Part shown: piece after piece, positions 1 through 37,258 of the stretch
Numbering within the stretch: the first letter of the stretch is position 1
Layout: each line of letters opens with the position of its first letter
Assembly: GCA_002269645.1 (NCBI GenBank)
Contig: NIVC01004714.1
Coordinates: 1-37,258 of the forward strand
Reading direction: 5' to 3'
Origin: Macrostomum lignano
Taxonomy: Eukaryota
Length of the DNA: 37,258 nucleotides
Notes under the pieces: generated by a model
The model's database searches: none
What the model saw: only the letters and a program-made list of their open reading frames with translations
What the model was told of the DNA's origin: nothing
Program-made: the position numbers and the translations under genes

Positions 1-45
1 GTTTCAATGTTGTTCCTATATTTTATACTTCTGATTTTGCAGCAG

Positions 46-2025
46 GTTGCTGAGGAGCTGCTATGCCCGTGTGCTTGGATCCCTACAACGACCCGTATAT
101 GTGTGCATCCATCACCATAGCCTGTGCCGCGAATGCTACAAATGATTGTTTCGACAGCTGGCAGTGACATCCCGCAGTGTCCGCAGTGCCGAGAGAAATT
201 GACCAGACCCGTTGATAATACTCAACTGCGCCGTCTGGTGGAGGCTCACCAACAGCAATCTCAGCAGGCGGTCCAATGCCAGGACTCTTCCTCTGGCGGC
301 ATCTGTGCTCGGCGTAGTGCTGAGCGATGCGGGCACTGCGAGCAGAGCTTCTGCGCGCAGCACTTCATCGCTCATAAAGAGCAGTTTCAAGTGCGTATGA
401 AATTCACTGTTTCTTTATTGTTTTTTAAGGTTCTCGCCTCTGAAGATTAATTTTTAGGTTCTTAAATGCGATCACTGATTTCAGACCGATTGCGTTGAGC
501 TTTTGTCGGCTGCAGATGAAGCAGCTCAGCAGTCAGAGATTCGACAAGAGTGCTAACGAATGGGAAGTCTTTATTCAAAGCTGTGTAGCGCATCTGATTG
601 AGAATTCGAGACTGCAGCGATTAATTCCCGAATCCTGGCTCGACGATGCATCCCGGAGGCACGCCGAAGATTTACGAAGCACCCTCAACGCCGGTGACCT
701 GCGGGCAGCCAGAGTTGCCTATGATGAACTCAGGATGGCCAAAGCGAGATTCGACCAGCAAGGACCGCCTCGCGAGATCGTTGGAGAGCTCAGCCGAGAT
801 GCGTTGTTCTCTCTGTTTCAAGAGAAGCTTTCAGCCCTGCTGAACGAAGCTGAACAGGTGTACCTTGACGGCATCTACGGCTTGGTCGAACGCGTTTGCC
901 ACATTGGAATTTCCACAGTCAAGCTGAAGATTGGGAAAGAGATACAGAAAATTCCGAGCTCAAATGCCGGCTTAGTTTCGTCCTGCCCGGTCGAGGCAGT
1001 CACTTCACTCCCTATGTTGACCTCAAAGCCATTCGTGCCGAGCAATTTGAAAGGGACATTCTGATTCGTTTCGATTTCCAGCAGCAGTTCGACTACAGCA
1101 CCATCAGTATGTCGAACGGTCTGGCCATTTTGGCGCAGTTTCTGCAGAGAGGACCGATTGAACTGCCGTTCTGTCTTCAGATGAAGTTTAAGGAGAGGCT
1201 GGCCTCCGGGGTGGCTGAAAATACCTACTGCAGCAGAATGTATCAACTCGCAGCTTTGCTGCCACTGGCGGAGGCGATCAGTCGTGGGGAGAGCATCGAA
1301 AACGTGGAGTGTCCTTGTGAGCTTCTGAATAATGTACACTTTAAATTACCTTTGTCTACTGAGTCATGACCCTGTTAATTAAACTACAAAAGCTTTTAGT
1401 GTAAAATGCACCAAAAACTCGCGAAACTAACTTTTCTGGTTTCTTAGAAAATATTTGGATTCTGGGCTTGCGCAAAAAATGCAATGCTGTCATGCTGAAA
1501 TAGGAAATAGCTTCTCTTCAACACAAATGATAATAATATTAGTTTTTGTAGAAGCAGATTGATAGTAAACTTTTCTGCTGGTTAGATCAGAGGTATTTGG
1601 AAAGAGTACTTAATTGTTCAAAATCAATAGTTTTTTGCTTTATGAACTAATTAGATAGAAATTGACTTTTACAACTGTAATGCGCATACAAAATCAAGGA
1701 TTTACAGAAGTTGCCCTGTCTGTCTAATGAGTGTCTGACTGGTGGAAATTAACGTTGAAAACGTGAGCTCCTAGCTCGACCGTAAAGACCAGCTGACGCA
1801 GTGCAATTAGCCAGTCGTCGTTGAGCCAGCTCCGGCTTCTTCTGAGATTGAATCTCCAAGAACCAGCCTTAATTGGTCTTTCCCGCAGTGCTGGATGAAA
1901 ATGAGGCACCTCGCGGATGTGTCACGGTGTCCACCAACCTGCCGTGTCTGCTGAACCAAGTCTACCGGGAGCTGCCGGCTGAGGAGCAAAGCGAAGTTGA
2001 ATTGAGGCTTCGAGGAGAAGAGTAA
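46..2025 (+). CDS. TRIM-like protein: RING, B-box, helical region, C-terminal RPGR1_C-type C2 domain. Exons ~46-390, 516-1316, 1889-2025; ~428 aa after repairing four 1-nt deletions. Start not visible in the window.
   Basis: Across frames the RING reads VAEELLC[P]VCLDPYNDPYMC..HHHSLCREC..K MIVSTAGSDIPQCPQCRE. The B-box-like motif is C..CARRSAERCGHCEQSFCAQHFIAH. Splice sites: caa|gtgcgt (390), ctgcag|atg (516), phase-1 cct t|gtgagc (1316), cgcag|tg (1889). The C2 segment KCRLSFVLPG..FDFQQQFDYS..LAEAISRGESIENVECP plus the last exon GCVTVSTNLPCLL aligns with the RPGRIP1L C-terminal C2 in this window. Confidence 0.72.
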
Positions 2026-3222
2026 TTTCGTTTGTCCGAAGTCAAAATATGGTAAAATTGAAAGGTTGATTAGTTCGCTAACGATGAAAACTGGAAACTA
2101 TGGCGTTGTCTGAACAGATTTTAAAAAACTTTTTTGAACAGTAATTGTTTCTTCAAATATTACTCCAGTGGCTGTCTACATGTATATTTAAACAACTTCA
2201 TACAATACTATCGCCGTAGTATTTCTGTTCTGACCTCAGTTGGTGCCTCAAAAGGCGTGACTACGCACTTCTTTCAAGCTCAGGAAGCAGGAAAATATTG
2301 GATTGCTATTAACTTTTCGCAAAAAACTTTTTGTCAATTTTTATAGAAAATATTGGAAGAGATTATTTAGCTAGCCAGGAGTTTTACACATGATTCTTTT
2401 TGTCAAGAGTACGAGCGAATTATTCACTGTGCTCGTATTGTGTTTTAGATATTCTATTTATTCTAGAAAGTTTTTTAGGGTGGTTTGTAGCTCGTAGGTT
2501 TGAACGCACTCATCTTGACGTCGTCCGTTTTTACATTTCATCATCAGCATCTTTCAGAGTCGTGTGGTGAGGAAAACACACGCTTAGTTGCCTATTTAAG
2601 GCATAAAATGATTTCTTTTCGAGTCATTGTATAATTATAACTTTAAACCAACTGGTTAATTAAGCGTCTTTTTCAATTGTTTGTCTCCAATTGTCGCCGT
2701 ATTCACGCTCGTATTTAACTAAATGGAACGTATTACGAGCTAAAAAGCATATATATTTTGAATTATCGAAGTGCGTATTTTTTTAGCCTCAAAACTTATT
2801 AATCATGTGAAGAACAGTTTAGTTTCATAAAACGCTTTTTGGGGTACACGCGATAGTAGAATTATTATACTGTGTAACCTTACAATCAATGATATATACA
2901 CGCTCAAAAAATCGCTTATTTTTAAGCAAAACAAAGAGTTCTTATTAAAAATTATCCATAAAACTTTGTTTAAGTTACTTACGGGGATAAGGCACGTATA
3001 GGCACTTTATCAGATACCTCGTGCAGAATCAAACAGCTTAAAAGTTAAAGGCTGCATTATTCGACTCGAACTCACATGCAAACTAATCACAGACAAATAA
3101 AACAAGAGATATAAAGTGAAAATCGATATGAATCCAGTATAATATGGAATTAAAAGTCAGGTGGTGAGTCACCTTTTGAGAGATGAAAGCATAAAATTAA
3201 GTCTTTCAGACTCAAAAAAATA

Positions 3223-4227
3223 TCACTGCATTCCATACTCACTTTTAACGTGATGAAGCAGCCGTGGCAGGCTGGTTTCAATCGCGATGCTGCCAATCTT
3301 CTTCTCGTTTTGAATGACTGAAATGAAAACGTTGATTGAATCTGGGGTGATTAACAGTAAAATACATTTTTTCTTTGTTGGATTGTGTTTTAAATGGTGT
3401 TTTAGAAATCGAACAAACTCGGAGAAGAAGTATAGCTCGTAGATCTATTTTTACCGTTACAGAAAATATAAAAACTGACACTCTGCGGAACCTTTGTGAG
3501 AATTCTATTCATCGGTTGATTTTTTATAATTCGGCTAAAGTAACTTGGTCACTCATTTAGTTGTCAATATATGATCCACTACACAAAACTTTAATGCCTT
3601 ATAAAAGACCCACGAAACATTTCAAACGTCTGTAGACCCCACGTCGATGTACGTCGCAGGCAATTGGGTATTTTGACGTTAAGCCGAAGGACAATGACAT
3701 CATGCGTAGGTCAGAATTCGATGTAATGTATTAAATGTATCAAATCTGCCCCCAACATAGATGGACGTCGAAAACGTCTGCTGACCTAAATGACTTCAAA
3801 TTGCAGACGGGAGAGAGAAATCTCTAAATCTCACGTGGAAACTCGTTCCAGATGCAGCGGTCCTGTTCGATACTGGGTTGCAGGCCGACACTGGCCTCGC
3901 ACAAGTCGCCGGCTGCCTCAGAAGCCAGCGTGAATCGAAGCTCGACTGGATCAGCCAGTAGCAAGCTGGTTAGCTGCTTCCTCATTCCTTCTTCTGAGTA
4001 ATCGAAGCGCCATATATAGTCGAAGTTTAGGCGATAATCTCCAGGCTGAGACCACCCGGGTCTGGGGATGAGCACGCTGGGCGTGTGCGTATCCTCAGAG
4101 TCGGAATAGCCAGGTAGATTGAAGTAAACATAGCAGTTGTTAAGTTTGGGATTTTTCAAGGCCTCACTGTTCTCCATTAGATGCACAGTTGATATGGCGA
4201 TGTCGCAGTGCCTCGAAACACTTTTCA
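3223..4227 (-). other. C2 module 5 (4227-3835 + terminal exon 3317-3223)
   Basis: RHCDIAISTVHL..FNLPGY..PRPG..FDYS..NEFP | LIQNEKKIGSIAIETSLPRLLHHVKSEYGMQ*. Confidence 0.78.
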
Positions 4228-7200
4228 CTGTGAATGGTTTTTGTGTTTATGCTTTTTCTAGAATTTGAAGCGTTTACAAGCGTTAAAAGTCGAAAATACT
4301 TACTCCTATAATTCAGATGACTTCTGATGCTGATAGGTACAAATCTAAGTAGAGATTTTGGTAGCTCACGGCCGATCTCCAGTAGCAAGCTGGGCAAATC
4401 CGTGCTGATTTTGATGCTGCCCACCTGCTCGGTCCTCGCCATTACTAAAAGTTTTTGATAAAATTCATTACAAAATCCGAAATTCATATTTACCGTATAC
4501 GCTTAACCAAGAAAAAAGCAAGTTTACACGCACCAGGAAATCTCTCGTCTCTAACATCTACATGTACTTCACGTCTTAAGTAATCATCGAGTTTTATGAT
4601 AGTCCTTCCCAATTCAGTCTTAACGAAAGAGCTTGCCAAGTTTGGTGATTTGCAAAATACTTTGAACGCGATCTGCAGGTTTCCCTCGAGAATCGACTTG
4701 GCCAGCATCAGGCGGTTTTGGTAGTTGCCTGTCATGCTGTAGTCGTAAGTCTTTTCAAAATTGAAAGCAAGAAGGAACCCGTTTTTCGGAGATTGCACCG
4801 AATTCAGGACTGGTCTCAAAAGAGACGTCATTGTTTCTTGAAGCTTGAAGCCGACTAGGTCAAATGCTACGTAGCACTTTCCCTTGCCAAGCTGTGAATT
4901 TGTCAAGACTTCAGATGAGCCGTTCAGTTGCACGTCAGCTATTCGCACAGTGCAGTTCTCAACGAAGGCTTCATCGATTTGCGAATAGGCTGATTATTAC
5001 CTGTAATCGAAAGGTACATGTCTGTCGTATCTATGGGAATGCATAGTTGTAAATATGAAGCCTCATTTATTTAATAGTTAAAAATACAAGGATAGTTCGA
5101 CATTGTCTCACCCTCGGCTTCATTTTCCTCAGCAGTAGGTTTTTGGACGTCCTCAAACGAGTCTAACCGTTTCCTGATCGAAATTAGCAGACTCGGCAGG
5201 CTCATGCTGATTTTGATGCTGCCAACTTTATTACCGTTTGACAGTACTAAAGTTACAAAGCGATACATTTTAATGCGACAACAATTCGGACACTATCAGC
5301 ATGTGATGCTAAAAGCCATCTAGCTTTTTACCAGACAGTATACATTTTTTTAAACTCTTGAAACTTGACTGAAACCTGCATTGCTTGCATACGAGTACTA
5401 AGAACTCATATTAATATACGACCAATGCCATCATATCACACTGGGACTACTGAAATAAAGGGTAAACCACCGTTGGACTAACAGGGAAAGCCACCCACTG
5501 TCTATCTACCGATCTAAAAAAACTCACGTGGAAAGCTTTGTTTTCGAATATCCTCGCCTCGAGCAACAAACTCGTCCATTTTGACAGTCGCCTTGCCAAG
5601 ATCCATGTAGAATTCACTCTCTGAGTCGGACGGCTCGCAAGCTACCACGAACGGAATCTCGATGCACTTTCGTCTTAAAAGCAGCATAGTTAATATTTTT
5701 CTCTTGCTTGCGCTGCTGTAGTCGTAGACTCCTTGGAAATTGTAGCTGAGGCAGAACTCCTCAGGTCGCGACCGGCCCGGCCTGGGCGTCGGCACAGATC
5801 CGGGCGTTTCCGTCTCCTCGCTTCGGAAACCGGGTAGCGAGAAGAGCACGGAGCACTTGGTGTTGTCGAGTTCTGGCTTCCTCAAAACATCGCTTGTTTC
5901 ACTGAGCTCCACATTGAATATCTGGACTTTACAGCTTTCCATAGTGAATGAAACTAAACCTAGTAGCTTTTTTAAGTCGTTCTAATTCTGTCTGGCATCA
6001 TTTAAATAGCAAGTTCGCAAACTGCAACTTCAGCTGAACTTTGGAATCTAAGAGGGAAGGTGAAGTTCTTAGGTAAAAATTGTCCACCTTAATGAACTCC
6101 CACTTTCTCTGAGTAATTTGGGCTCTGGAATAATATTAGCAAAAAATGAAGTCAGAGATCTTCTACGTGCTGCAAAAGCCAATCTTCCTTTGTGCGAAAG
6201 AGAGTTAGAAATTGTCAGAAAAGTGGATGCGCTGCACACATCTTTGAGTACGTCATTGTGCATAATAAAATGGCAGCACTAAAATTAGCAGCTTACCCAA
6301 ATGAAGTTCGCTTGATATTTTCTATTTATCTACCAAAATATAAAAATAAAAACGCTGAAACAATATCTAATTCATAATATAATCAGAATATAATTCTGAA
6401 TTAGAAATAAAAACAAAAATTGCAAACTTATTCACTAAGAATCTACGATACACACACCGTAAAACATAACAAACGAGATTCTCTATAGATGTACATGTTA
6501 GTACAGAAAATTTAATTTAGAAATAACCTGATGCATCAGTTACACAACCAATGAGCATATGCTTACATGTAAAGTTGAGCAAAATGTTAGTAGCATGTAC
6601 AGCTGATTCTAACGAGCGCACTGGTTTGATTATAGCTCTCATAACTTTTTTAGCAGAATTTCAAACCACTTGGGCACTTTGAAATTGATAAGCTTTCTAG
6701 CTCTTTAAAAAAGTTATTGACTTTTTTTTACCCTCTGGTATTTCATCGCAGATTTCCCGCAGCAGACTGGGCAAGTTGGTGCTAATCGTGATGCTGCCAA
6801 CAACTTCATCTCCGTTCAGTACTGAAATAATAAAAAACGGCGTGTCTGGTGAACGACGCGTCTACTCGACATGTCCACTCAAAGCCCATTCTACTGAATT
6901 TTAAGCACGCACAAACATGAAAACAATCATAAACTCATCAACTCAATCATGAAATTATCAACTCAATCATGATATCATCAACTCAATCATGATATCATCA
7001 ACTCAATTATGAATCATCAACTCAATTATGAGATCATCAACTCAATTATGAATCATCAATGTAATCATGAGATCATCAACGCAATCAATAAATCATCAAC
7101 TCAATCCATAAAATCAACAACTCATTTTTGAAATATTCAACTCAATCATGAGATCATCAACGCAATCGTGAAATCATCAGCTCAATCAATGAATCATCGA

Positions 7201-8537
7201 CTCGATCATGAACTCCTGAACTCATGAATTTGATTATCATCAAAAGCGTGGATCATTCAAAATTAAGACCACAAAAGAACATCAAAAGTTAGCTAGGATA
7301 AAAAATCAAAGCGAATAAACTAATTAATTAACATGTCTTGAAAAAACCTACACGGAAAGCTCTCGTCTTGAATGTCCTTGCCATCAGACACACGATCTTC
7401 GAGCTTGACGACCGCAGTGCCAAAATCCAAGAAGAACTCGCTGTCCTGATCCTCCGCCTCGCACACCAAGGTGAACGGAAGCTTAACTGGACTCGCCATT
7501 AACAGAGTGGCAAGCTGGATCCGCTTATTGTAATTTGTATCGTAGCTGTAGTCAAATCTCTTCTGGAAGTTAAACCTAAGATGGAAATCTTTTGCCTTGG
7601 TCCAGCCTGGTCTTGGCGTTGGTAGCGAGAGAGAAGTCTCCGTTTCGTCCATATCAAAACCAGGTAGATCAAAGGACACAAAGCTGTTGGTGTTGTCGAG
7701 CTCGGGATTCTGTAGAGCTCGGCAAGATTGCTCTAGCTGGACACTCGATATACAAACTGTACACATCTCGCGCGAGTCTGCTTTAGAAGTCGACTGAGTC
7801 TTCCGACTGAGTGCTGAAGTTTGTTTCAGGTTTCAAACTCTTATTGAGAGTGTCTTTACGAGAAAATGACGAATAAATACAGAGTAAAATGGCAACAATA
7901 AAGCTTAAATTCTCACAGTCTTTAATATGATCATCGGCAGCTGGATTCGTTTCTATGCAAACGGCGAGCAGTAAGCTGGGCATACTTGTGCTCAGCTTTA
8001 TCGTGCCAACTTGCTCTTTGTAGTAGGAAAGCACTAAAATATAAAACATCCGATTGATAGTAGTTAAGGAACTGATTTCAATTGATTACCTACCGGTATT
8101 TTAAAAATATAACATTCTCAACCCGCACCAGGAAAGCTTTCCTTTTGGACGTCGTCCTTTCGAGCAATTCTATTATCGAGTCTGACAACGGCTCGGCCCA
8201 GATTAACTTCACTTTGCGATTCGTCCGGTAGGCAAATCAGGGTAAAATTGACATCAGCATGATACCGGCTGAGCATGTCATCCAGAGCCTGTCGCTTGCC
8301 TCTGCTGGAATAGTCGTATGAACTTTCGTAATCGAATTTCAGGACCAGATCCTGGCGTGTGGACGCTCCTGGTTTTCGGGTCGGCAGGATGGCGGGGGTC
8401 CTGGTGGCCTCCAGCTTATAGCTTGGCAGATCGAAAAGCACGTAGAACTTCGAACTTCTCAGATTCAATCCTGCCAAATCAGGGCAAGTCTGGTCGAGCC
8501 GGACGCTGAATATTTTCACCACGCAGCTTGATTCCAT
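3223..8537 (-). CDS. Predicted ~909-aa protein of five tandem RPGR1_C-type C2 domains. Exons 8537-8129, 8033-7917, ~7813-7352, 6821-6732, ~5959-5528, 5246-5112, 4989-4534, 4444-4304, 4227-3835, 3317-3223.
   Basis: Five homologous ORFs share C.V.I..V.L, LPG, TPRPG, F...YDYS, PF..vCE and FP motifs. Each is followed by a small exon with VGsIkIS..LPSLL. All nine introns are GT-AG and phase 1, and the exon sum (2730 nt) is an open frame. Acceptors at 7813 and 5959 are less certain. Confidence 0.7.
4304..4989 (-). other. C2 module 4 (4989-4534 + 4444-4304)
   Basis: ENCTVRIADVQL..FDLVGF..FNFEKTYDYS..ERFP | VMARTEQVGSIKISTDLPSLL. Confidence 0.78.
5112..5959 (-). other. C2 module 3 (~5959-5528 + 5246-5112)
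   Basis: MESCKVQIFNV..LPGF..TPRPG..EFCLSYNFQGVYDYS..QSFP | LLSNGNKVGSIKISMSLPSLL. Confidence 0.82.
6732..7813 (-). other. C2 module 2 (~7813-7352 + 6821-6732)
   Basis: MCTVCISSVQL..FDLPGF..TPRPG..FDYS..ESFP | LLNGDEVVGSITISTNLPSLL. Confidence 0.8.
6925..7230. repeat. Degenerate ~19-20 bp minisatellite (ATCATCAACTCAATCATGA[G/A/T]), ~15 units, in the intron splitting C2 module 2
   Basis: Tandem units read directly from the sequence. Confidence 0.9.
7917..8537 (-). other. C2 module 1 (large exon 8537-8129 + small exon 8033-7917)
   Basis: MESSCVVKIFSVRL..FDLPSY..YDYS..ESFP | VLSYYKEQVGTIKLSTSMPSLL; gccATGg start context. Confidence 0.8.
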
Positions 8538-10579
8538 GGCTCCGCTGTAAAATCCGCATAAAATCCATGTAAAATTCAGATATTATTAGTTTGATAAGAG
8601 AGTTCTCGCTGTTTCTAGAAAATTAAAGAACCTTTTTTTCCAGAATGTTCTGAATTACTGATTGACTGAATTACTGAATAAATTTGTTTGAATTACTGAA
8701 TAACTTTGTTGTTATACTCGTGAAATCTCAGTTTGTTGAAATGAAGAAAAAACAGCGAGAACTTTCTTATCAACCGAATATAATTATTATCAGTTGCTCT
8801 TTCTGCAAGCTTACCCAAATTGATGGTTCTTTGCTATCAAGACTTGCAGTCAATATAATCGTACTTGCATATATGATTACGAACTTATACACTGCTACAG
8901 AGGTATTCTGAAACTTTTTCTGCATTGTGTTGGCTTTTTAGCGAGAGACAGTTTGCATTTTGAAAGACTCACAATTCGTTCGGATGGATGGACGTATGTA
9001 CGAGTGAGCGCTCAGAAAGACTTACTCATGCATGATATGTGAGAGAACCATTTAATTTCGACAAATCTTACACTATTCATCAGTGGTCTATTGTACGAGT
9101 ACATTAAACTGCCTGCCAACTCTCTCAACTTAGCTCTTATTGTGGAGTATGTGCGTACTCAGCATCCACATCTAGTCTGTCTGAGGTTTGCGTCCACTTT
9201 TTACAAAGCATTCTTTTATTAAAATGCGTCTAAACAGTCTCTAAGCGTAGCTTTCTGTATGCTAGAAAGACTACTGCACTCGTACATCCGTTTTAGTAAG
9301 TTACATGTATTTTTAATTTTTCTCAAAAATAGTGCATCAAACCTCTAAAGGACAGTTAATTGCTCGCTTTCTTATTTGAAAGTACAACAGGCGAAATATT
9401 ATAAATTTTGTCTTATAAGCTTTCCATCTCCCTAATGAGAAATCCTCGAACGAACTTTTAAACTGCATCCTTTAGATATCCATAAAAACTTTCTCAAATT
9501 TGATTCCCACGTACACCGCCTTTCTGACAAAATACTTAGATTGTACTATGGTAAATAATAAATAAAAGTCCATTCGTGCCAATGCTGCAATTCCACTTGC
9601 ATTGTTCAAAAACAGGTCTTTTGAAAGAGATTTTCTTACCATGTTATACTCAGAATCTAAAAGTATTTTTGCATATACTGCATTTAGGACTGTATGGTAT
9701 TGAATGATGGGTCTTTGATCGAACCAAAAAGTCTGAATTTAGAGCAAACCTTATTTCTTAGTTTTTGAATTTGCTCGTATATTTTCTATCCGATATTTCG
9801 TGTCAGCTGATGGAGAATCTTTCATAACTCTAAATAACTTAACCAAATAAGCATTATTAGAAGAGGATATAGTTAAAATTAGATTTAAAATTTTCTCAGA
9901 TCGACAACCGGCACATCTTAGGCGCATAACCCTTAGAAAAGCGTTTATTTCGCTTTTGAGTTACAAAGCAATTTTTAACTTAACTTTATCCCTGCTCGTC
10001 GCAATCGCGCTAAAGTAGTTACGCTCGTAGAAGTAAAAATATCAAATATTCAAGTCGGTAAAGTACGAGACGCAGCATCTGTGATAGAAGATAGACAGGT
10101 TTTTTTCAACATTTTTGTAGAAAATCACAGCGAGAAAGCGAAAGATCAGGCGTCGAAATAATAAATAAAATAGTTCTTAAGAGTACGAGCGTATTCCTTT
10201 ACATAAACGTGGTGCGAGGTTTCTGAGAGTGCATGTTTACTCTTACAGAAATACCGAAAAGAGACAGTTCGTCTAAATTCTACCACAAAGTACCTTAACC
10301 GAAACGGGAACGAACCAGAAACTATTAGCAAGACACTCCAGGTGCCGATATTACCAAGCTACCATAACTAGCCATAAATCTAAAAAACTAGAAAATACGT
10401 AACACCATTTAGCTTCAAAACATGACACGTGCCAGACGTTATTATAACGTACAACAAAATCGCAGTGTACTATGATGAGAATCGCATAAAGGTAATAAAA
10501 TATCTGCAGGTTTTTTACAAAATCCATTATACTAAAATCAAGTCTAAAATGTCTTTAACAGCCAGAAGACAGAGCAGGA

Positions 10580-11560
10580 TTAGTTAACGAATCTGACGGC
10601 AGACTTTTTCGCGTCCGGGAGTTCGTTGTAGACCTCCAGTAGCAGGCTCGGCAGGTTCATGCTGATTTTGATGCTGCCCACTTGTTCATCGTTCAGCATT
10701 ACTAAAATTGTTAGAAGACACATGGCATGATTAATGTGAGGTTTGGATTAGTCAAACTTTTTTATTTACCAAATATTGAAAAAAATATAATTACATATTA
10801 CTACTAATGATAATAATTGATTAAACCTGCCCAAAGGGTATTACGTGGCGCATCTGAAGGCTGCGTACGGCTGTTCAGTCCAAGGACTGGGGGGTCGCCA
10901 GATAGCCTCAATTACCCCAGCTAATGCTGGCACCCATTTTACAGCTGGGTGAACTGAAGCAATGCAGAGTTAAGTGTCTTGCTCAACGACACAAATTGTT
11001 CTGAGAGGGTCCAAAATCAAACAACCGACCTTTCAGTCGCTTGTCCAACGCTCTGTAACCACTAAGGCTACAACAAGTATTTGTGAAAGTGTATTTCAAA
11101 TAATCCTACTCGAGTTTTCACCCGAGTCAACTGGAACTCACGAGGAAAGATCTCTTCTCGAATGTCCTCGCCTTGAGCGATTCGATCGTCCAAATTGACC
11201 ATCGTTTTGCCCAGATCCACGAAAAATTCGCTCTCTGGATCAGACGGCTCGCACACCACAGTAAACGGGATCTCAATACTCTTCTGTCCCAATAGCAGCA
11301 TCGCCAGTACTTTGCGCTTCTCGTAGCTGCCGGCGAAACTGTAGTCGTAGACTCTCTGAAAGTTGTAACTGAGGCAGAACTCATTGGGTCGGGACTGGCC
11401 GGGCCTGGGCGTCCAGAGAGACACTGGCGTCTCCGTCTCCTCCTGCGAGAAGCCAGGCAAGAGGAAGAACACGTAGCACTTGGTGTCATCGAGGTCGGGA
11501 TTTCTTAAAGCCTGGCAGGTCTCGCTAAATTGCACGTTGAATATCTGGACTGTGCAGGCT
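10580..11560 (-). other. RPGRIP1L: Native C-terminal (RPGR1_C-type) C2 domain of RPGRIP1L; likely parent of the six derived copies
   Basis: MEACTVQIFNV..EEIFP | LMLNDEQVGSIKISMNLPSLLLEVYNELPDAKKSAVRFVN*, with the same phase-1 intron as the copies. Confidence 0.85.
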
Positions 11561-14500
11561 TCCATTGAAGCACGACCAGTAGCTGTCAGCATCAGCTGCT
11601 GGCGGAGCTCGTCCCCGTGGCTACTCTCCGTCACCACGCCATCGGATTCCTCCGCCTCCGGTGCCGGACGCTCTGTGTCCTCGTAGTCGTCCTCATACTC
11701 AACCTCCTCCACTTCGTCTTCCGGTTCCGCCTCGGCAACGTCGTAATCGTCGTCTCGCAGACTGACGGACTGCAGATGCGAAGCGACGCCGCTTCTACCA
11801 ACGCTTGGACCTGAAGAATTCGTGGAGTTTAGAATTCGCTTGGAGCTTGGAACTATTGGTTTAGTCTTTATCTTCTGCAACCTGCTTATTCGTTTTTTAG
11901 ACAAGCCCTGGGTCAGGGTCATTGACAATGCCGAACTCACCTAACGATGTATTTCTCACGTCCTGCGTATCCGTGATGCTAGTTACGCTGTCGGTGACGG
12001 ATGCTAAAGTGATGAAACCAGTTAGGAAAATTTTAGCAGCCTTGTTTTAGCCAGAAATAGTACTAACAGTAGGTTGATTAAACATGCATAGGCCTACCAT
12101 CCATGAGGGTGCTGACCCGAGTCTGGCTCGCCTGCGTATCGCCAGCGCCACCGCTGCCGCCGATGCCAAGCCGACGCTCTGCCGCGGCAGCGGCTAAAGC
12201 AGCGGCCGACGGCGCGTGCCGTTTCGGCGGTTGCGGCGTCTGAGACACCTGCGGCTGAATTTGGAGTTGGGATTCAAAAATACAGCTAGCTAAAAAATAA
12301 ACTTCAGTAAATTTTTTATTATCTTATCAACACTACCAACCTGATTGTCCCCAGTCAGAGATCCCGACCGACTGCCAGTTCGTGCACTCGGTCGTGGCGA
12401 CGACGATCCCGACGCTGAATTCGGTGCTACAGCCGACGCTGTTGGCGATGGACCATGGCTGCTTCCGCTGGCACTTCCTGTGCCTCGGCGCGGGGTTCTC
12501 GGCTGCTGAACTGGCTGTGGCTGCGGCTGCTGGGGCTGAGGTCGCTGCTGCGTGCTTCTCGCTGATCCGGTGTCGGATCCCAAGGCCACCGCCGCGCTGC
12601 GATCAAGAGTAGAGTCATACCCAGGTTCCCGACGGTGCTTCAACTGCGGCTTGTCTCTCAGCAGTTCAGCTTCGCCAGTCATCAGTGGCAGAGGCTCGGC
12701 AGGTCCGTCCCAATGACCAGCTGGATTGTACGCAAACTGCCAGCTGAGCTCAAGCTCCAGAGTGCCGTTCGGCTGCTGATCAGCTCCGAGTAGTTGGTAG
12801 ATGCCCTGCACAGCCCGGTTCTGGCTTAAGGACACTAGATCGATCTACATGGGGATACGAGTAGATAGGGGATTAGTAATGGGGTAAATCGGTAAGAATA
12901 AGAATCTTTTGGGTCTTGAATATGCGAGAAATATGAAAAGTTCAGCCATGGCTGTTAAAACGTGTCTAAATCCTTATTGAAAACAATGAATGACATCCAA
13001 GTCACCTTAGCAACGCCTAGGTAGGCGCTTTCAAGAGGATCGTCTTCGTCCAGCACCCAGACGACGAGCTTCTGCGTCTTCAAATAGCGATCCAACTCTG
13101 GGGTCGGCGTCAGAGTCAGCTGCTGGTAGAATTGGAACTCTGGATCGCTCGAGTTTGGGATGGCGGGCGAAACAGTGTCCTCACAGTCGAAGAACTTGTA
13201 GGAGCAGTACGGCGTCGGCTGGAAGTCCGGTCGGCGAGCTTTCAAGCCTCGACAGCGGACGATCTTCACGCCCAGAGTGTTGGCACCGCCGGCTGCGCGA
13301 CGATTCTGCGCCAGGTCGTCGAGAGCTTTCAGGCCCTCCGCGGCCGCTTGGTGATTGGCGGACATGTAGCCAGAGCCTTGGCGCGCTCCCGGTAGAGCCG
13401 CATCGCCTGCTCCATGGGCACCCGCATCCGCATCCAGTAGTCCAGGCAGCCCACCACCGTGCCTCCGTCCACCGACACCAGCTGAGCTCGGCCGGACACC
13501 GGGGCGGTCGGTTTCGAGTCGAGCAGCTCGCGGAAGTAAAGTCGACAAGCGGCCACTTGATGATAAGTGACGCCTACTGAGTGGTAGAGCTCCAGCCGTG
13601 CCTGTTGTGGGGCAGATTACGCTTCCAGTAGAATACGAGCAGAGAGAGTCTAAATGTATTTCCGATGAGTTTTTACTAAACAAGTTTCCGAAAATTAAAG
13701 GGGCTCATCAAGCGGTGGTTCGGCGGTGAAGGTAATTCTGTCCACTTCGCTGACTTCTGAGCACATCAAAGCTACAAGCGCGCCAATACTGTACGCAGGC
13801 ACGCACTCATACACGTACGCTCACACAGGATGTACAGCGGCCTTGACTTTCTAAGGCATGTACACTCTCTGTGCTTTGGGGGGTTGGTTCTCATTGGTGT
13901 GAATTGCACGACAACCCACGGGAAAATTTTCGAGCACACAAGCCCCAAATGGATGTCGCCACGCACGGAAGCAAACCAGGGGTTGAGTCGCAGGAGTCAG
14001 CAGCGTTTCCCTCTGAGCTACTATGCTTCTTAATCCGCTTAGTATCACAAAGAGCTGATCAAATGACCAACAACACGTGTACATTACCTTTTCCTTGTTT
14101 ATGTAGTGCAGGAACGAATCGTCAACCTTCACCACGTACTGCACGGTCTTGTTGAACTCGGCCACTCCGCCAGCTGCGCGCAGCACATCGGTGGTCTGCA
14201 ACTCGCACACATAGAACGGCCAGGTGCAAAACAGGGACGGATTCGAGTCGCCACCGAGCAGCTGGATTCCTTCATCTGTCAGGGTTAGACGGCCAACGTG
14301 CAGCTCGACGAGATTTTCGCCGTTTTGCAGGTGCACAGTTTCGTCGATTTCGTCCACTCCGTCGGCCTCTTCGCTTTGAAGCTGGTTTTGCTGGTCGAGC
14401 AGAGCGAATTGCTTGGTGCCTGCAATGATAGCCCGGGGTGTCAAATAAGCTGTGCTGAACTACAGAAACGTCTTTTTCGATTGAGCATTAACGTCTGTTG

Positions 14501-17500: not shown

Positions 17501-20500
17501 CGCTGGCGCCGTTTTGCACTTTTAGGGCGCGAATCTGGGCGATTGTTTTGGTTTTGGTTCGAGGGCGTTACGCAGAATTTTGTGCTTCTTATGCGACTCT
17601 GGGCGTATGACTCTCGCACTGATCTTTACGAATACGAAAAAATTAAATAGATTACGATTTTTAGCAAGACCTCATCAATAAAATGCATGCGCTTCCCATT
17701 GAATAAATCCATTGAAACCATCGCATGAGGATAAACTGCACTACAGTTTTTTTTCGCACCGCTATTTAAAATCAGAATGTCATTCTGATTTTTTAAAGCT
17801 AGCTGTTTAAAAAGGCTGAGAAAATGTACAACTCTATGACCTTTATCGTTATTTTACTGCACACGGTTGGTCTGCTAGCTATGCTCAGTTTGTTGACCGG
17901 TCACCGAAGACTGGTGTAAGTTAGATGAACATTGTCAAGAACCAGACAGAAGTTTTAAGTCCATAACAATGAGTACAGAACTTAATAGCCTTGGATTAGG
18001 AATCAGAAACTGAACTCGTACCCAAATTAGACTTCAAAATTCGAAACTCACGCGAACGAAGTTTGATGATAAGAAAGACAGCTGTTAGGGCTTTGAATAG
18101 CAAAGATTTATTCGGCAGTTAGCGTTGTCAAAACATTTTAAATCGACGACAAATCCTCGCCGTAGATGTAATTTTGCGCTTTCGCTTTGAGGTTTATAGA
18201 GTACATTGCATTGCGTTTTCATTTCAATATCTTTAATACATTGCAAGATAAAACGGTGACTTTGCGATAAAAAACTTGCAAGTGTTTTACATCGCGGTTT
18301 ACGAGTACTGTAAGTGAAAGTTGCTTCCGAGCAAGAAGCGAAACAGAAGGTTTAGGAATATCAGAGTTGCCAATATATCTCTGCAGTTATTTTCGTACAG
18401 TAAAATTATTTAAATAATGCAAGTTGCTCTTCTTCTGCTACTCCCAGTTTATTCGTTCGATTGCGCTGTTCACCGCTTGCAGCACCAGCTGCATCTGCTG
18501 AGGCGCCACGTCGGAGTTGGTTCGGTCAGGTGTGCTGGAGCCGATCCTCAGAGGTGCAACTGGCTGGGACGTCTCCTCCGAATCAGAGGAGCAACCGGTG
18601 TCAGTGCATGTGCAGGTGCTGCAGATGTCCTCGCTGCCTTCATCGCGCTGATGCTGATGGGCCAGGGTCGATTCGACCACTTCAACAACCGCGGTAGATG
18701 CTGTGGCGAACTGCATGCTACCGCCGAAGCCTCGCGTGGCGGCGCTACCGGTCAGCAGTGCTGGCAGCGGTTCGCTCGAAGGTAAATCGACTTCCTCGCC
18801 GGAGCTCACTGGCTCCGTGTTGTTCTTGTTTGCAAGAGTGTCAGGTGAGCTATGAGCGCTACAGCTGCACGAACTGACACTGCTGCTACCGTTGTTGTCA
18901 TTGCTAGTGCTGTTAGTGCCAGTGGTTGTGGTGCTACCAATCAAAGAAATCTCCACGCCGATTATTGACGACGGCACAGGTCGCACGCGCGGCGGTTGGC
19001 AAATCAAACAGCGAGAGAGCCTTGCCAGATCTGCTGCGTGTGTGGCAGCGTTGCTTCCTGACGGCTCAAGTTTCTCAGCCTCTGGTGGAGTCGGGAAGAA
19101 ACTTAACAAGTGCTCGTATTTATCTTCATCGTCTGAATTCGCGTCGTCGTCTAAAACAGCATCAACAGTTCCAGTGTTGGCGTGAAACTCCGGACGGTCT
19201 TGCAGTTGGATGCGCAGCGCCGGTCGACGCCGATCCGCTTGGCTTGCCGGACCCGCGGAAGTCACCGCCACGCTCGGCGTTTCAGCGGCCACGCCAACTC
19301 CGAATACAATGTCTGTTACGGCATCGTTAGATGAAACATACTGGTCGCAGATGCGGGTGGACGCTGCCATTGCGTTAGTTGGTTCGCAAAGCCGGTACCG
19401 AGACGGGGGGTTATCTTCAGCTTGCTTCAGTGAGCACTCACTTGTCGATAGAATCACTGCATCAACGCGACAGACTTTGGACTCCTCGGACAGAGGCCAA
19501 GACATCATGGCTGGAGAGCCCCCGGCGCCAAGGGAAACGAAGCTGCCATTTAGATCAGCGTAGCTGCTGTCGCTATTCCAGATTTCCACCGACTGTCTGA
19601 TGGTTTGCGTCAAAGTGGCAGTTGACGACGTTGGCGTGGCCCTGGTGCTTGAACTAGAGATAATTCCCATCATTTGTTGGCGCGGATTCGGCGACAGGTT
19701 TGGTTGTTGGAGTGTCTCTAACCGATGCAGTTTCGGCATCGGATAAAGCTTGGCTTGGTGCAGTTCGGGGGCGATATTGTGCGACGTTGTCAATTGCTTT
19801 GGTTGCTCAGGCTCCTCTTCATCGCTTATTTTGTCTTCGTCAGTTGATTTTTGTTCATTGACATGCTCGACTTGAATGTTTTTAATCGATTGCCGCTCCA
19901 TTGACTTGGGTATCGTGGGCGATGTATTTTGCTGTTTCTTGGACTTTTCAGCGTTGGGTTGTTTGTCTGGCATTGTTTTCTGATCGTCGTCACCATTTGG
20001 CGCGTGTTTGTTCTTCCTTTGCATCCATTTCTGCGCGCGGTGGAAGAGCTTGTAGCGGTAGAAGTGCGCCGCTACAAAAAACACAGCAGCTAGAAAGCAT
20101 AGTACAATTGCAACTATAAGAAGAATGGTCGTCACGTTCGACAATGCGCCAGAGTTCGAATCAGACGAATTAACTGAGCTCGACTTCGTCTGTCTTGAAC
20201 TTTTAGGATCGTCGCTTTGCAATCGATTCCAGCCTCTAGATGGAAGCTCGAGCCATGCAGATTCCACAGCTAGCAGGAGCCGGGAGAAGCGATTCTCGCC
20301 CAATGCTGCCCGATAAACTGCAGCCGAGGCTGCACTTTCAGCGACTAATCGTTGTCGACGACCGCTACTGGCATCCTTGTCAAATCTGTTCTCTGAATAG
20401 TAGAACAGCTGAGTGCAACGCAATCGCGCAATTGGTTCTGACGTCACGAGCTGACTGACGCTGCTTAACGTTTGCTGGGGCGGCTCGCCTCCTCTGGGCT

Positions 20501-23201
20501 GCAGTGTGAACAGAAAAGCGACGGAGACGCCCATGCTTGGCAGTCTAGCGGCTAGATTGGTCTCTAACGGGCATCGGAACTGATGGCACTGCACAGTTTC
20601 ATTCAGACAGTCGGCCAGGCAGAACGCGTTGGCTGGTGCTGGTAAAACTTCTACCACTGAGAAAGCCACTAGACCGCGACCGCGAGCGTCCATTGAGTGG
20701 CAGCGTATAAGTATAGAGCCACCGGAAGTGCTGTCATTGTCTAGACGAATCTGAGTAAAACGCAGGCTAAGCTCGATACCCCCGCCAGGAATAGACAAAG
20801 AATGAGTCTCTGTGGACGTTTCCACTCCACCCAGGGAGCCGTGCAGTCTTAGCTGAGTGACTGTTGAAGCAGCTGACGATTCTGACAACAAATCAAGGCC
20901 ACATACCGTGCAGTTAAATGACAATGACTGGCGATCCGACCAAAGTTTCCGACTCCTTGGAGGTGGAACAAAAACTACGCTGCGAGATGGAGGTCGGTTG
21001 CCGCACAAGCTCGGTCTAGCAGCAATGCGCACGCTAAAAGCTTGCGGCGATAGTGTGGGGCTGGCTGTCCCTACAAGTGATGCAGCATTTCGACAAGTCC
21101 AAAGACCAGCTAACGGTGGCGGGCCTGGATTTCCCGGCGGTTTCCATGGCAATAAAAGTAGCCGGTGAGGCTCTACTAGGCTTCCCAAAGCCGGATCTGG
21201 TGGTTTAACCGCCTCAGACCAGGTGCTTGCGTTTTGGCCTTGCAGCCAACTGAACTTACAATTCGGATCGTCTGCCGAGGCAGCCAGACAGAGGAAGGGG
21301 CATGGCAGAGCGTGAGTTATGGGTGGATCATCGTACAAGTCGATACTGAGTACAGCAGGATCATGACTTATTCTTTCGGGAATAAAAGCAGAGGTCGCGA
21401 CATCAGTTCTGTTTTCGATAGTGCTCACTTGAATGCGCCATCGAAGGAAAAGTCTCTGGCCACTCGGCAGTTGAGCGTCAGCGCTAATGCAGATTTTGGC
21501 TGGGCTCCAATCGCCTGTCCAGCCCAAGCGAAGACGACCGGCAAAGTAGACAGCATAGAAGGATGCCGGATCGCTTGAATTCGATTGGAGCCATGGAGAC
21601 GCTACAGCTGGATTGCTGCAGTTGTAAAGCGCGTACACCGCTGTATGCAGAGGCAAAGCGGCCACGGACAGTGTCGGAGACGGCATCAAATCGCAATCCA
21701 GTGCCACAAACTGGAGCAGGTTTTGCTGACGCTGCATGATGCGGCGGCACGGAAGGCTTGAGCTTCCTTGACTGTCAATAAGGGCACTTCTAGCCGGTCG
21801 CTCATCCCACAGTCGAACTCGAGCGGAACTCGCGACAACGGCACCACCCAGGCGAAGGTGGCAAGCGATGACGAGAGCGCTGCGGTCCAGCGTCGGCTTA
21901 GAAAACGCCAGTGTGAGTACGGAGCCTTCTGACTTTCTGAAGACACCTCTGGCCGGCGCAAATCCTGGTCCAAGGTCAAAGCTGAACTTCTGCTGACCGC
22001 TGCCTGAGCCCGCTTGAGCAGTCAACGTGTGCCTTTTCTGCAATCCAGTTGATGCGTCGTCGACACTCCAGCTGAGCTCAAGCTGCGATGCAGACTCGCC
22101 GTCGCCACCATCAAGCAAACACGCCAGCGCCACTGTGGACCCGTTTGCAATGACGAGAAAGGCATCATTGGTCTGGTGGGCGCTCCAAACAATGGCTTGC
22201 TTAGAGGCGGCGGCAGCTGCTAACTCTTTAGAGTTCGGTGGTCGAAACAGCGGTAGCGACGAGTGGCGTAGCTCGTGCGGCGAGTCTGGTGACAATGTCA
22301 AAGTCGTACACGGCAGAAGGATCAGGTTGAGCTGGATGATGAAGCTAAATAGGCTGATAGGCTGGTACTCAATCTTGGACATCGCTTCAAGCTTCACGTT
22401 TGACGTTTGAATCCGGAAAAGTCTGCAGCCGCGATCGTAGCATGTTTGCGCCAGAGGCCGGCGCAACTTAACTTGTTGCTTCTATTTTTGCTAAATACAA
22501 TAACAGGCGGCCGCAGTATTAGCATGTATACTTGTCGTCTTAGAATTGTTTTTGTGATCTATTGTTATAAAACACGAGATCGATCAGGTTCTACCATAGA
22601 AGTTTTTACTTGAAAAGTGACTTAGCTCGGATCTATTCATAAAACTTACAAATCTTACTTACGAGCTACAAAGCAACTTTTATGTGTGCGTGTGAGTTTA
22701 CCTGTTCGATGGGTCAGCGCAACGGACCTTTACAGTAATAATAATTTAATAATTGCATGATTCTGTGCCCCTGGCGAAACGCATTGGGCGAAATCTCCCA
22801 TTGCACTGAATCCTGGGCGCATTCAAGCACGCCAATGCTAGCTCGTAGAAAGTTATGCATGTTAAGTCTCTGTGCTTTGGGAGTCGGTTCGGGGAACTGG
22901 GGCACAAAAAAGTTATCGAATTTTCCATTTCACACCTAACACTGCTCACCTCATCTCGCTTTTTCTTCAGCACCAGCTTAAAATCGCGAATCTTTTCATC
23001 TTGTTCGCGAAATTTCTCCTTCAACTTGACGTGGTCCTGGTACAGGCTGAGGTATTTATCCTCCAGATCTTCGCGCAACCATTTGCCGATCATCGCTTTG
23101 TCCAGCTGGTTGGCGGTGAGCGGCTGCAGCGGCGGGACGCCATTGGCGAATTTTGCAGAGTCAGGTCTGCTGCGTTTCACTGGCAGATGGCCCGAGTCCA
23201 T
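10580..23201 (-). CDS. RPGRIP1L: RPGRIP1-like/Fantom ciliary transition-zone protein, ~1375 aa. Exons 23201-22950, 17534-17106, 16846-16467, 16004-15758, 15137-14762, 14419-14088, 13601-13006, 12844-12341, 12254-12098, 12003-11941, 11810-11142, 10701-10580.
   Basis: Recognisable motifs: N-terminal LPVK and LEDKYLSLYQD, long coiled coils, [61 protein letters not shown], a middle C2 (PYCSYKFFD, YLGVAK) and a C-terminal C2 (ETPVSL.PRPG, FTVVCEP). Intron phases are consistent. One missing G at 13370-13371 breaks the frame. Confidence 0.92.
10800..11071 (-). mobile_element. tRNA-derived SINE with a CORE/Meta-like central domain, in the last RPGRIP1L intron
   Basis: The minus strand starts with A-box-like TAGCCTTAGTGG and has a degenerate B-box (GTTTGATTT). 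The central GTGTCGTTGAGCAAGACACTTAACTCTG..CAGTT..CAGCTGTAAAATGGG (10993-10933) resembles the MIR/CORE consensus. A simple AT-rich tail follows. Confidence 0.65.
15450..15514 (-). mobile_element. tRNA-like head (SINE head or tRNA pseudogene), in an RPGRIP1L intron
   Basis: A-box-like AGCTCAATGGTA and B-box-like GGTTCGTTTCC, ending ..CGCGACCA. There is no matching 5' acceptor-stem arm, so it is not a functional tRNA. Confidence 0.35.
18438..22382 (-). CDS. Intronless ~1314-aa type-I membrane protein: signal-like N-terminus, several divergent Ig-like domains, one TM helix, long Ser-rich disordered tail. Nested in RPGRIP1L intron 1.
   Basis: 3945-nt open frame from the first ATG (MSKIEYQPISLFSFIIQLNLILLPC). 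Ig-like C..W..C patterns (VALAC..LSWSV..VIAC; NCKFSW..GLWTC). About ten N-x-S/T sequons precede the TM ILLIVAIVLCFLAAVFFVAAHF (~20135-20065), which is followed by basic YRYK..RKNK. Confidence 0.8.
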   Translation of the reverse strand: MSKIEYQPISLFSFIIQLNLILLPCTTLTLSPDSPHELRHSSLPLFRPPNSKELAAAAASKQAIVWSAHQTNDAFLVIANGSTVALACLLDGGDGESASQLELSWSVDDASTGLQKRHTLTAQAGSGSGQQKFSFDLGPGFAPARGVFRKSEGSVLTLAFSKPTLDRSALVIACHLRLGGAVVASSARVRLWDERPARSALIDSQGSSSLPCRRIMQRQQNLLQFVALDCDLMPSPTLSVAALPLHTAVYALYNCSNPAVASPWLQSNSSDPASFYAVYFAGRLRLGWTGDWSPAKICISADAQLPSGQRLFLRWRIQVSTIENRTDVATSAFIPERISHDPAVLSIDLYDDPPITHALPCPFLCLAASADDPNCKFSWLQGQNASTWSEAVKPPDPALGSLVEPHRLLLLPWKPPGNPGPPPLAGLWTCRNAASLVGTASPTLSPQAFSVRIAARPSLCGNRPPSRSVVFVPPPRSRKLWSDRQSLSFNCTVCGLDLLSESSAASTVTQLRLHGSLGGVETSTETHSLSIPGGGIELSLRFTQIRLDNDSTSGGSILIRCHSMDARGRGLVAFSVVEVLPAPANAFCLADCLNETVQCHQFRCPLETNLAARLPSMGVSVAFLFTLQPRGGEPPQQTLSSVSQLVTSEPIARLRCTQLFYYSENRFDKDASSGRRQRLVAESAASAAVYRAALGENRFSRLLLAVESAWLELPSRGWNRLQSDDPKSSRQTKSSSVNSSDSNSGALSNVTTILLIVAIVLCFLAAVFFVAAHFYRYKLFHRAQKWMQRKNKHAPNGDDDQKTMPDKQPNAEKSKKQQNTSPTIPKSMERQSIKNIQVEHVNEQKSTDEDKISDEEEPEQPKQLTTSHNIAPELHQAKLYPMPKLHRLETLQQPNLSPNPRQQMMGIISSSSTRATPTSSTATLTQTIRQSVEIWNSDSSYADLNGSFVSLGAGGSPAMMSWPLSEESKVCRVDAVILSTSECSLKQAEDNPPSRYRLCEPTNAMAASTRICDQYVSSNDAVTDIVFGVGVAAETPSVAVTSAGPASQADRRRPALRIQLQDRPEFHANTGTVDAVLDDDANSDDEDKYEHLLSFFPTPPEAEKLEPSGSNAATHAADLARLSRCLICQPPRVRPVPSSIIGVEISLIGSTTTTGTNSTSNDNNGSSSVSSCSCSAHSSPDTLANKNNTEPVSSGEEVDLPSSEPLPALLTGSAATRGFGGSMQFATASTAVVEVVESTLAHQHQRDEGSEDICSTCTCTDTGCSSDSEETSQPVAPLRIGSSTPDRTNSDVAPQQMQLVLQAVNSAIERINWE

Positions 23202-36785: not shown

Positions 36786-37258
36786 GAGGGTTTATGGAGA
36801 GAGCTCAAGAGAGGTAGGGGCGATGGTAAGGACAAGGTCGAAGGCGAAGTCGCAGGCACATACGCGTGAGTACCGCATTGCATTCAACCCAGTTTGACAT
36901 TTAACAACAATGAGCAGCTCAGATTCAACCGGCTCAAAGGTTAACAGCATTCGTGAAAATGGACTGAAATGCCATGTATACTTGCAAAGTTTTTTTGGAA
37001 CATCATTGCACTTTAACGGCGGGACTTTCCCTCGATTTTTTTTCAATTATGAATGCTTCATCTATCATTTCTGATTTTGATTTACAATGCAGCCCGGTTC
37101 CTAACAAAACTGATAATCAAATTCATGGCAGACTCGCCATGGGGGGCTACCAGGCAGGCAGACGGAGAAATTAAAATTGCAAAAAGCATGACAGACTGAA
37201 GCGAAAAAATTGGTAGCCATGCACGCATGAAGAACGGATGAGCGATTCGTAACTCTCG

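Follow-up and report, generated by a model that had tools for sequence, protein, structure and literature searches.

A tandem array of RPGR-binding domain cassettes downstream of RPGRIP1L in the flatworm Macrostomum lignano

Known RID proteins and overview of the locus

The RPGR-binding C2 domain (RID) docks RPGR onto RPGRIP1 and RPGRIP1L at the ciliary transition zone and is known as a single C-terminal module. In RPGRIP1/RPGRIP1L, it occurs once, at the C terminus, after a coiled coil, a C2-C2_1 domain, and a PKC-type C2 domain. The RPGRIP1 RID folds as a type-II C2 sandwich, and its ligand is RPGR and not lipid (PMC4519163). Here, we describe an array of five two-exon RID cassettes (U1 to U5, each with exons a and b) that lies on the minus strand, 2 kb downstream of RPGRIP1L, in Macrostomum lignano. 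The window analyzed is the entire 37,258-bp contig NIVC01004714.1 (i.e., C4714) of the M. lignano assembly (764 Mb; 5,269 contigs). As a whole, the region is best explained by a lineage-specific expansion of the RPGRIP1L RID that gives rise to RID-only proteins, a reading to which we assign about an even chance.

The cassettes belong to the same family as the human RPGRIP1/RPGRIP1L RID (PF18111; PDB entry 4QAM_B) by profile and have the same predicted fold. They differ from it in that they stand alone, occur two to five per predicted protein, and share only ~20% identity with the human domain. Existing models of the locus (i.e., BOX15_Mlig026271 and its UniProt counterparts) cover cassettes 1 and 2, and none includes cassettes 3 to 5. 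What is new here is an architectural variant of a known domain family, partly annotated already, together with an unannotated constrained extension.

Proteins with several RIDs are also found in protists. Prymnesium parvum KAL1530447.1 (2984 aa) contains ten tandem RPGR1_C stretches (PF18111 E value, 1e-127) that, unlike the M. lignano array, follow the other domains of a complete RPGRIP1L-like protein (coiled coil, C2-C2_1, and C2); these repeats are near-identical and therefore recent. Two protist proteins from ENA (P0015 and P0064; 2,000 to 2,800 aa) are made up mostly of RID-like repeats (3 to 5 stretches). The initial annotation of the window stated that the domain normally occurs once per RPGRIP1/RPGRIP1L protein; as these protist proteins show, this does not hold universally. 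Among the top 100 profile matches, animals carry the RID once per protein, save for the M. lignano gene and two proteins with two stretches (P0039 and P0087). The multi-RID proteins of protists and of M. lignano have independent origins. Two fish NLR-like proteins (P0011 and P0080) were discarded as spurious, as their similarity is confined to the final 60 positions of the profile and stems from a repeated "...SLLLEVLKLQ" motif.

Domain identity and predicted fold

The only Pfam match of the array is PF18111 (RPGR1_C; E = 2.5e-44), and neither PF11618, PF00168, nor a coiled coil was encountered upstream of it. The array is thus a carrier of the last domain of RPGRIP1L and not an RPGRIP1L gene. 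Relative to the PF18111 gathering score (22.9 bits), four of the five cassettes scored above the cutoff (U1, 33.0; U2, 43.3; U3, 46.5; U4, 32.3 bits), and U5 scored below it (17.1 bits; E = 0.005). A profile built from the units and the parent domain had one match in the PDB, the RPGRIP1 RID 4QAM_B (E = 1e-12). For U4 and U5, which are the most divergent units, AlphaFold gave confident models (pLDDT of 89.4 for U4 and 93.2 for U5, the latter modeled with V instead of L as the junction residue). The best PDB match of both predicted structures in Foldseek was again 4QAM_B (E = 3.9e-12 for U4 and 8.8e-12 for U5; TM, 0.68 to 0.81), with ordinary C2 domains ranking behind it by five orders of magnitude. 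On the basis of these scans and models, the earlier description of an array made only of RPGR-binding C2 domains, with no other domain, is borne out.

Cassette structure and relationship to the parent gene

The parent gene is RPGRIP1L (BOX15_Mlig004133g2; P0001), which encodes a coiled coil, C2-C2_1, C2, and RPGR1_C domains; its GenBank model is flagged as partial at the 5' end. Its RID (PF18111 E value, 5.6e-16) was located by a tblastn search of P0001 on the window and by direct reading. The domain is interrupted after "FP" by a phase-1 intron, the same position as in the cassettes, and the protein terminates in AKKSAVRFVN (...PDAKKSAVRFVN, followed by the stop).

Rebuilding the array from the sequence gave five tandem copies of the last two RPGRIP1L exons, downstream of that gene on the same strand, as first described. 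In the ten rebuilt exons (Table 1), all introns are GT-AG, all junctions are phase 1, and a single open frame of 898 aa results. The frame is exactly 909 aa, the length initially proposed, once the GenBank acceptor is used (i.e., U2a beginning at 7813 instead of 7780). A five-unit frame can be constructed in every genomic copy of the array (909, 913, and 915 aa). The Met with which U1 starts falls opposite the internal Met region of the parent domain (ASMEAC versus GAMESSC), also as claimed.

Table 1. Positions of the cassettes, the parent domain, and other features in the window
Feature	Position	Strand	Details
TRIM-like gene (RING, B-box, coiled coil, diverged RID)	25..2025	plus	Convergent; RID at ~890-1315 and 1888-2022
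U5 exon B	3223..3317	minus	TGA 3225-3223; phase-1 GTGAGT donor-like site six codons before stop
U5 exon A	3835..4227	minus	Acceptor cattcacag/TG
U4 exon B	4304..4444	minus	Tail KSLLRFV homologous to parent tail; stop lost; donor AGGA/GTAAGT, phase 1
U4 exon A	4534..4989	minus	In-frame acceptor aatcag/CC at 4989 (window and C2920)
U3 exon B	5112..5246	minus	Donor GTGAGA, phase 1; ancestral stop lost; read-through tail differs between alleles
U3 exon A	5528..5959	minus	In-frame ATG 5942 (ACTATGG); possible phase-1 TAG acceptors giving starts at 5959 and 5953
ATTAAA, candidate poly(A) signal	6511..6516	minus	181 nt past U1-U2 stop; pattern match only
U2 exon B	6697..6821	minus	Terminal coding exon in annotated mRNA; TAG 6699-6697
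20-bp satellite CAATCATGAAATCATCAACT, ~15 copies	6924..7224	minus	Inside U2 intron; length varies among alleles
U2 exon A	7352..7813	minus	Annotated acceptor aacttcag/CA at 7813; alternative AG giving start at 7780
U1 exon B	7917..8033	minus	Donor GTGAGA, phase 1
U1 exon A	8129..8537	minus	ATG 8537-8535 in GCCATGG context; donor GTGCGG, phase 1; P0003 residues 1-136
TTACAG acceptor	8545..8550	minus	7 nt upstream of U1 ATG; fits spliced-leader motif [T/C]TNCAG; putative spliced-leader use
Parent RID (RPGRIP1L)	10580..11571	minus	Penultimate-exon part 11571-11142; phase-1 intron; last exon 10701-10583; TAA 10582-10580
Single-base indels, C2920 versus window	~11936, 11898, 11645, 11509, 11388, 10894, 10308, 3754		Sequence comparison
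ATPase-intron satellite, 11-mer x 63	28783-29470		
ATPase-intron satellite, 20-mer x 99	30130-32140		Strong G skew
ATPase-intron satellite, 22-mer x 38	32462-33290		
GA-rich 12-mer array	36279-36791		

Genomic copies of the array

The same array is present on three more contigs (C2920, C1491, and C210). C2920 is the window haplotype assembled twice: over window positions 2900 to 13043, the two differ only by single-base indels (Table 1). The arrays of C1491 and C210 are 95 to 98% identical to that of the window, and by sequence these contigs behave as two additional alleles or homeologs. M. lignano is a hidden polyploid (PMC10468722). Since three distinct alleles (four contigs) have the array, a misassembly is ruled out, in agreement with the initial annotation. 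In a genome-wide search with protein queries, the array was confined to one locus, and RID exons elsewhere were found only singly, in two other RPGRIP1L paralogues (P0002 on C3397, C4801, and C139; P0008 on C309, C1170, and C884).

The indels of C2920 give its RPGRIP1L RID a frameshifted appearance and are probably unpolished errors close to the contig end. Differences of 39 to 179 bp in the length of the U2-intron satellite explain most of the divergence of that intron between alleles. The spacer between U2 and U3 (5960 to 6731; 772 bp) shows no indels and 0.6 to 1.3% substitutions between alleles, compared with up to 10% in some neighboring introns; it may comprise the 3' untranslated region of a first gene together with regulatory or 5' sequence belonging to the next one; gene conversion is another possible reason.

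Cassettes 1 and 2 form an annotated gene

Cassettes 1 and 2 correspond to a 370-aa GenBank protein, BOX15_Mlig026271g1 to g4 (PAA67347.1, PAA87952.1, PAA46747.1, and PAA54392.1), which is present on all four contigs. The 370-aa product of the window is identical to P0003: it starts at ATG 8537, joins U1b to U2a at aacttcag (...HIKD/SLSRKTQSTSKADSREMCTV), and stops at TAG 6697. The initial annotation had instead spliced U2b at a GTAAAA donor after 6732. The GenBank model passes this GTAAAA unspliced and ends at the U2 stop (...PEGKKKSITFLKS), in a manner resembling the end of the parent protein; the U2b tail GKKKSITFLKS is similar to AKKSAVRFVN. Three UniProt models from a second annotation (A0A1I8J8Y7, A0A1I8H1D6, and A0A1I8GPY1, i.e., P0004 to P0006; 325 to 331 aa) use the same U2 stop. 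The proteins are recorded as uncharacterized "RPGRIP1 C-terminal domain-containing" products. The M. lignano annotation was derived from RNA-seq assemblies, and spliced-leader (SL) and poly(A) reads defined the ends of the genes (PMC5730564).

The UniProt models join U1a directly to U2a without U1b (both donors are phase 1), so that the last strands of the first RID are lost. The skipping of U1b is either a real isoform or a prediction error on an older assembly.

The TRIM-like neighbor of the array and the U1-U2 gene have consecutive accessions on C1491 and C210 (PAA67346/PAA67347 and PAA87951/PAA87952), which implies that no coding sequence is annotated across cassettes 3 to 5. No protein covering U3 to U5 was found either by a search restricted by length (215 to 684 aa) or by a profile search of 1.84 billion representatives without restriction on length, and the U3-alone and three-RID proteins predicted for all three alleles had no exact match. 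The databases contain no protein spanning U2 and U3, and all annotated products end in U2b. Exact look-ups gave no transcript contigs on record that encode P0001 or P0003, and a full-text literature search including the supplements of M. lignano papers found no published mention of Mlig026271, Mlig004133, or Mlig013276. The claim of a new gene consequently fails for cassettes 1 and 2, which were already annotated from RNA-seq data, and stands for cassettes 3 to 5 insofar as these are unannotated.

Selective constraint on the cassettes

Among the three alleles, U1 and U2 differ by 18 synonymous and 10 nonsynonymous changes (omega, 0.16; P = 2e-6), and their exons contain no indels in 1,045 nt. 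The corresponding counts for U3 to U5 are 10 synonymous and 17 nonsynonymous changes (omega, 0.48; P = 0.055). The flanking introns differ at 4.1% of sites, and the nonsynonymous divergence of U3 to U5 (0.013) is a third of the intron value (0.041). The exons of U3 to U5 contain 3 indels in 1,652 nt (two of 6 nt and one of 1 nt, the latter within the first 13 nt of the modeled U4a), compared with 13 indels in 1,085 nt of the introns, which amounts to a six-fold deficit (Poisson P = 4e-6; P of ~0.004 when the indel-free U2-U3 spacer is also counted). No stop codon is present in any of the three alleles, all splice dinucleotides are retained, and, except for the 1-nt indel in U4a, we found no disabling mutations (i.e., stops, frameshifts, or lost splice sites) in them; the open frames and splice sites are thus kept, as originally reported. 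Between units, synonymous differences are saturated (pS, 0.73 to 0.83; 0.61 for the parent versus U3), and pN is 0.22 to 0.51. Given the saturated pS values, the lack of stops, and the indel deficit, all five cassettes have a long history, for most of which they were coding. Constraint at present is certain in the case of U1 and U2 and probable in that of U3 to U5. The earlier suggestion of purifying selection on all copies hence holds without reservation for U1 and U2; for U3 to U5 it holds as a long-term constraint, with a recent omega that falls short of significance.

These data bear on the possibility that U3 to U5 are silent remnants of a block duplication, formerly coding and now decaying, with only the U1-U2 gene being functional. 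Such relics would account for the omega value of U3 to U5, for the 1-nt indel at the start of U4, for the clusters of nonsynonymous changes seen in U4 (C1491) and in U5 (window allele), for the lack of a poly(A) signal near the U5 stop, and for the failure of two annotation pipelines and of the database searches to provide a gene or protein. They would not be expected to have kept 1.65 kb free of stop codons and all splice sites intact in three alleles, to be six-fold depleted in indels relative to the flanking introns with both internal indels being 6 nt long, to have diverged at nonsynonymous sites at a third of the intron rate, or to yield confident RID folds for U4 and U5. We consider decay to be quite unlikely.

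Proposed origin of the array by local duplication

The nine M. lignano RIDs are united in a single clade (support, 100/100), within which the parent pairs with U3 (96 to 99/86 to 89), U1 with U4 (83 to 94/35 to 58), and U2 with a group of U5 and the TRIM RID (85 to 87/90 to 92). A clade of U1 to U5 without the parent was rejected (approximately unbiased test, P = 0.0098). This pairing fits a duplication of the block [RPGRIP1L-RID, U1, U2], which would have produced [U3, U4, U5], with an inverted copy of U5 being captured later by the TRIM-like gene. U4 lacks the start Met that its paralogue U1 has, and the ancestral stop is missing from U3b and U4b, which now end at consensus donors (GTGAGA and GTAAGT).

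Predicted joining of the cassettes into gene products

The M. lignano splice motifs are GT[GA]AG for donors, CAG for acceptors, and [T/C]TNCAG for SL acceptors (PMC8629364). Consensus donors are present at the U1-U2, U3-U4, and U4-U5 junctions, and the U2-U3 junction combines a GTAAAA donor with a TAG acceptor. TAG acceptors and unusual donors are common in the locus and in RPGRIP1L, and the nonconsensus U2-U3 sites are accordingly a hint, not proof, against a join. Across the ~9 usable RPGRIP1L introns, real acceptors lack pyrimidine tracts and donors vary, so splice-site strength cannot settle the U2-U3 junction. A scan for poly(A) hexamers was compatible with several models and likewise not decisive.

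The initial annotation proposed one gene, in which all five cassettes are exons and the main product is the 909-aa five-RID protein. Its junctions are frame compatible in all four genomic copies and are GT-AG and phase 1 throughout; the GTAAAA and TAG sites are of kinds common at this locus; U3 to U5 are constrained although no separate start has been annotated for them; and U2b might be a composite exon that can serve as a terminal or as an internal one. In the UniProt models and in the RNA-based GenBank ones, however, the coding sequence always continues past GTAAAA to the U2 stop, and the U2 tail beyond GTAAAA is still similar to the terminal tail of the parent. GTAAAA is also the sole inter-unit donor that departs from GT[GA]AG, no protein of this kind with a length of 500 to 1570 aa is in the databases, and selection differs between U1-U2 and U3 to U5. 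A single five-domain gene is thus supported by its frame and contradicted by the annotated products and by the U2-U3 donor, and we regard it as unlikely, albeit not negligibly so.

We provisionally favor a pair of products predicted from the sequence, namely, the annotated two-RID gene and a three-RID product of 544 aa (548 and 550 aa in the other alleles), the latter being probable. The start codons of both are well placed (U1, GCCATGG with TTACAG 7 nt upstream; U3, ACTATGG). The three-RID protein would start at ATG 5942, with U4 and U5 cis-spliced from U3 through consensus GT[GA]AG donors; since U4 lacks the start Met of U1, U4 and U5 would depend on such splicing for their translation. Alternatively, use of the weak GTAAAA donor in U2b over its stop and poly(A) site would yield the 909-aa form, a possible minor isoform if U2b is a composite terminal/internal exon.

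Several points weigh against this favored arrangement and the expansion of which it is part. Every junction beyond U2b is a prediction, and two independent annotations have no gene in U3 to U5, which could mean that this part is not expressed. In the window and C2920, a 1-nt deletion makes the better U4 acceptor (ttacag/GT) out of frame, so that the U3-U4 junction is in frame only from aatcag/CC, 11 nt further on, and the frame would otherwise stop after U3; in C1491 and C210, a 1-nt insertion puts the upstream ttacag/GT acceptor (equivalent to 5000) in frame. This indel is uncertain because single-base indel errors are present in the assembly, as the C2920/window pair shows. Read-through of U3 reaches a stop within ATTAAATAAA, and U3 could hence be a one-domain gene. 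The recent omega of U3 to U5 is not significantly below 1, and the changes specific to the window allele in U5 are 5 nonsynonymous versus 2 synonymous. In the tree, the U1-U4 node is weakly supported, and the branches of U1, U4, U5, and the TRIM RID are long (1.05 to 2.7 substitutions per site).

The U3 read-through stop would also suit an array of several one-domain genes, in which a polycistronic transcript is resolved by SL trans-splicing. SL trans-splicing is widespread in M. lignano, and operons occur (PMC5730564 and PMC8629364); each cassette is closely preceded by an acceptor, and the Met at the domain start is kept in U1, U2, and U3. Such an arrangement conflicts with the annotated mRNA, which joins U1 to U2, and with the lack of an in-frame ATG at the domain start of U4 and U5, for which the ATG at the end of the SL offers no substitute, being out of frame at every phase-1 acceptor. 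It would also leave the strong phase-1 donors ending U1b, U3b, and U4b unexplained, and in C1491 a 1-nt indel shifts the tail that results from read-through of U3. We consider separate one-domain genes to be very unlikely. A start codon supplied by the SL was rejected for U1 as well, as the terminal ATG of the SL is out of frame at the U1 acceptor.

Lastly, the cassettes might serve as alternative 3' ends of RPGRIP1L. The RPGRIP1L intron following ...RNTSL is phase 1 (donor at 11941), like the acceptors of U2 to U5, and splicing from this donor to any phase-1 cassette acceptor would swap the RID. The U1 acceptor TTACAG, however, is phase 2 and is frame incompatible with the phase-1 donors of RPGRIP1L; U1 has a strong ATG of its own; the U1-U2 gene is annotated apart from RPGRIP1L, which ends at its own stop; and no chimeric protein is in the databases. 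The chance that the cassettes act in this way appears to be minimal. A link from the last RPGRIP1L exon to U1 was also judged unlikely, as just one phase-2 GT is available ahead of the stop, and it is a poor donor (GTCTGC).

Predicted functions of RID-only proteins and the TRIM-RID neighbor

RPGRIP1L is anchored at the transition zone by its coiled coil and by the two C2 domains that precede its RID, all of which are missing from the predicted RID-only products; these products should therefore be soluble and bind the RCC1-like domain of RPGR in a multivalent manner. Such proteins could buffer, compete for, or cross-link RPGR, or they could bind a diverged ligand. The scaffold or competitor role suggested initially is plausible, and a soluble multivalent binder of or competitor for RPGR would be the simplest mechanism. 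The long branches of U1, U4, U5, and the TRIM RID suggest that these domains may bind new ligands.

RPGR itself is present in M. lignano: the best PDB match of the orthologue L023 is human RPGR (E = 3e-58; colinear from the N terminus). RPGR-type RCC1 genes are located on at least nine contigs and fall into about three sequence groups (C758/C108; C23/C2848/C1475; and C1403/C4448/C4426/C2155). The presumed ligand may thus have several paralogues, paralleling the three RPGRIP1L paralogues.

The TRIM-like gene adjacent to the array is BOX15_Mlig013276g1/g2 (P0012/P0110; 446 aa). Pfam detected only RING families in this protein and not the RID, which was recovered by profile (E = 4.7e-16) and was sister to U5 in the tree; the seventh, TRIM-fused RID copy reported initially is therefore real, although too diverged for Pfam. 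This RID derives from the same local expansion as the cassettes and has the phase-1 intron position in common with them. It differs in being placed on an E3-ligase scaffold, where it replaces the usual C-terminal substrate-binding domain, and in being the most diverged copy (branch, 2.5 to 2.7). In such a protein, the RID could act as the substrate-recognition domain of an E3 ligase.

A broader and rather unlikely scenario is that the phase-1 modular array is spliced to RID-only proteins of two, three, or five RIDs, which, together with TRIM-RID and the RPGR paralogues, would form a flatworm-specific system that acts outside the transition zone and titrates, cross-links, or degrades RPGR or a new ligand. 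The RID-only proteins would then be natural dominant competitors of RPGRIP1L.

If stand-alone multi-RID proteins and the TRIM-RID fusion are confirmed, they would show that a C2 module of ciliary proteins can be put to new use as an independent binding unit. As a transgenic species that is amenable to RNA interference, M. lignano would then offer natural reagents for studying RPGR bound away from its anchor. Cassettes 3 to 5 provide ~2.7 kb of constrained coding sequence that is absent from both M. lignano annotations. The significance of the locus is limited by the facts that the first gene is already annotated, that the lineage is narrow, and that the function is only inferred.

Other features of the window

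An uninterrupted open reading frame of 1,347 aa without a Pfam match is located on the minus strand (18438-22481). It lies between an exon resembling RPGRIP1L N termini (22746-23261, minus strand; ...EDKYLSLYQDHVKLKEKFREQDEKI...) and the remaining part of RPGRIP1L (17567 downwards), and it may be a gene nested within an RPGRIP1L intron. Farther along the contig, a P-type (E1-E2, cation-transporting) ATPase gene occupies positions 26900 to 35000 of the minus strand, and its introns are full of long satellites (Table 1).

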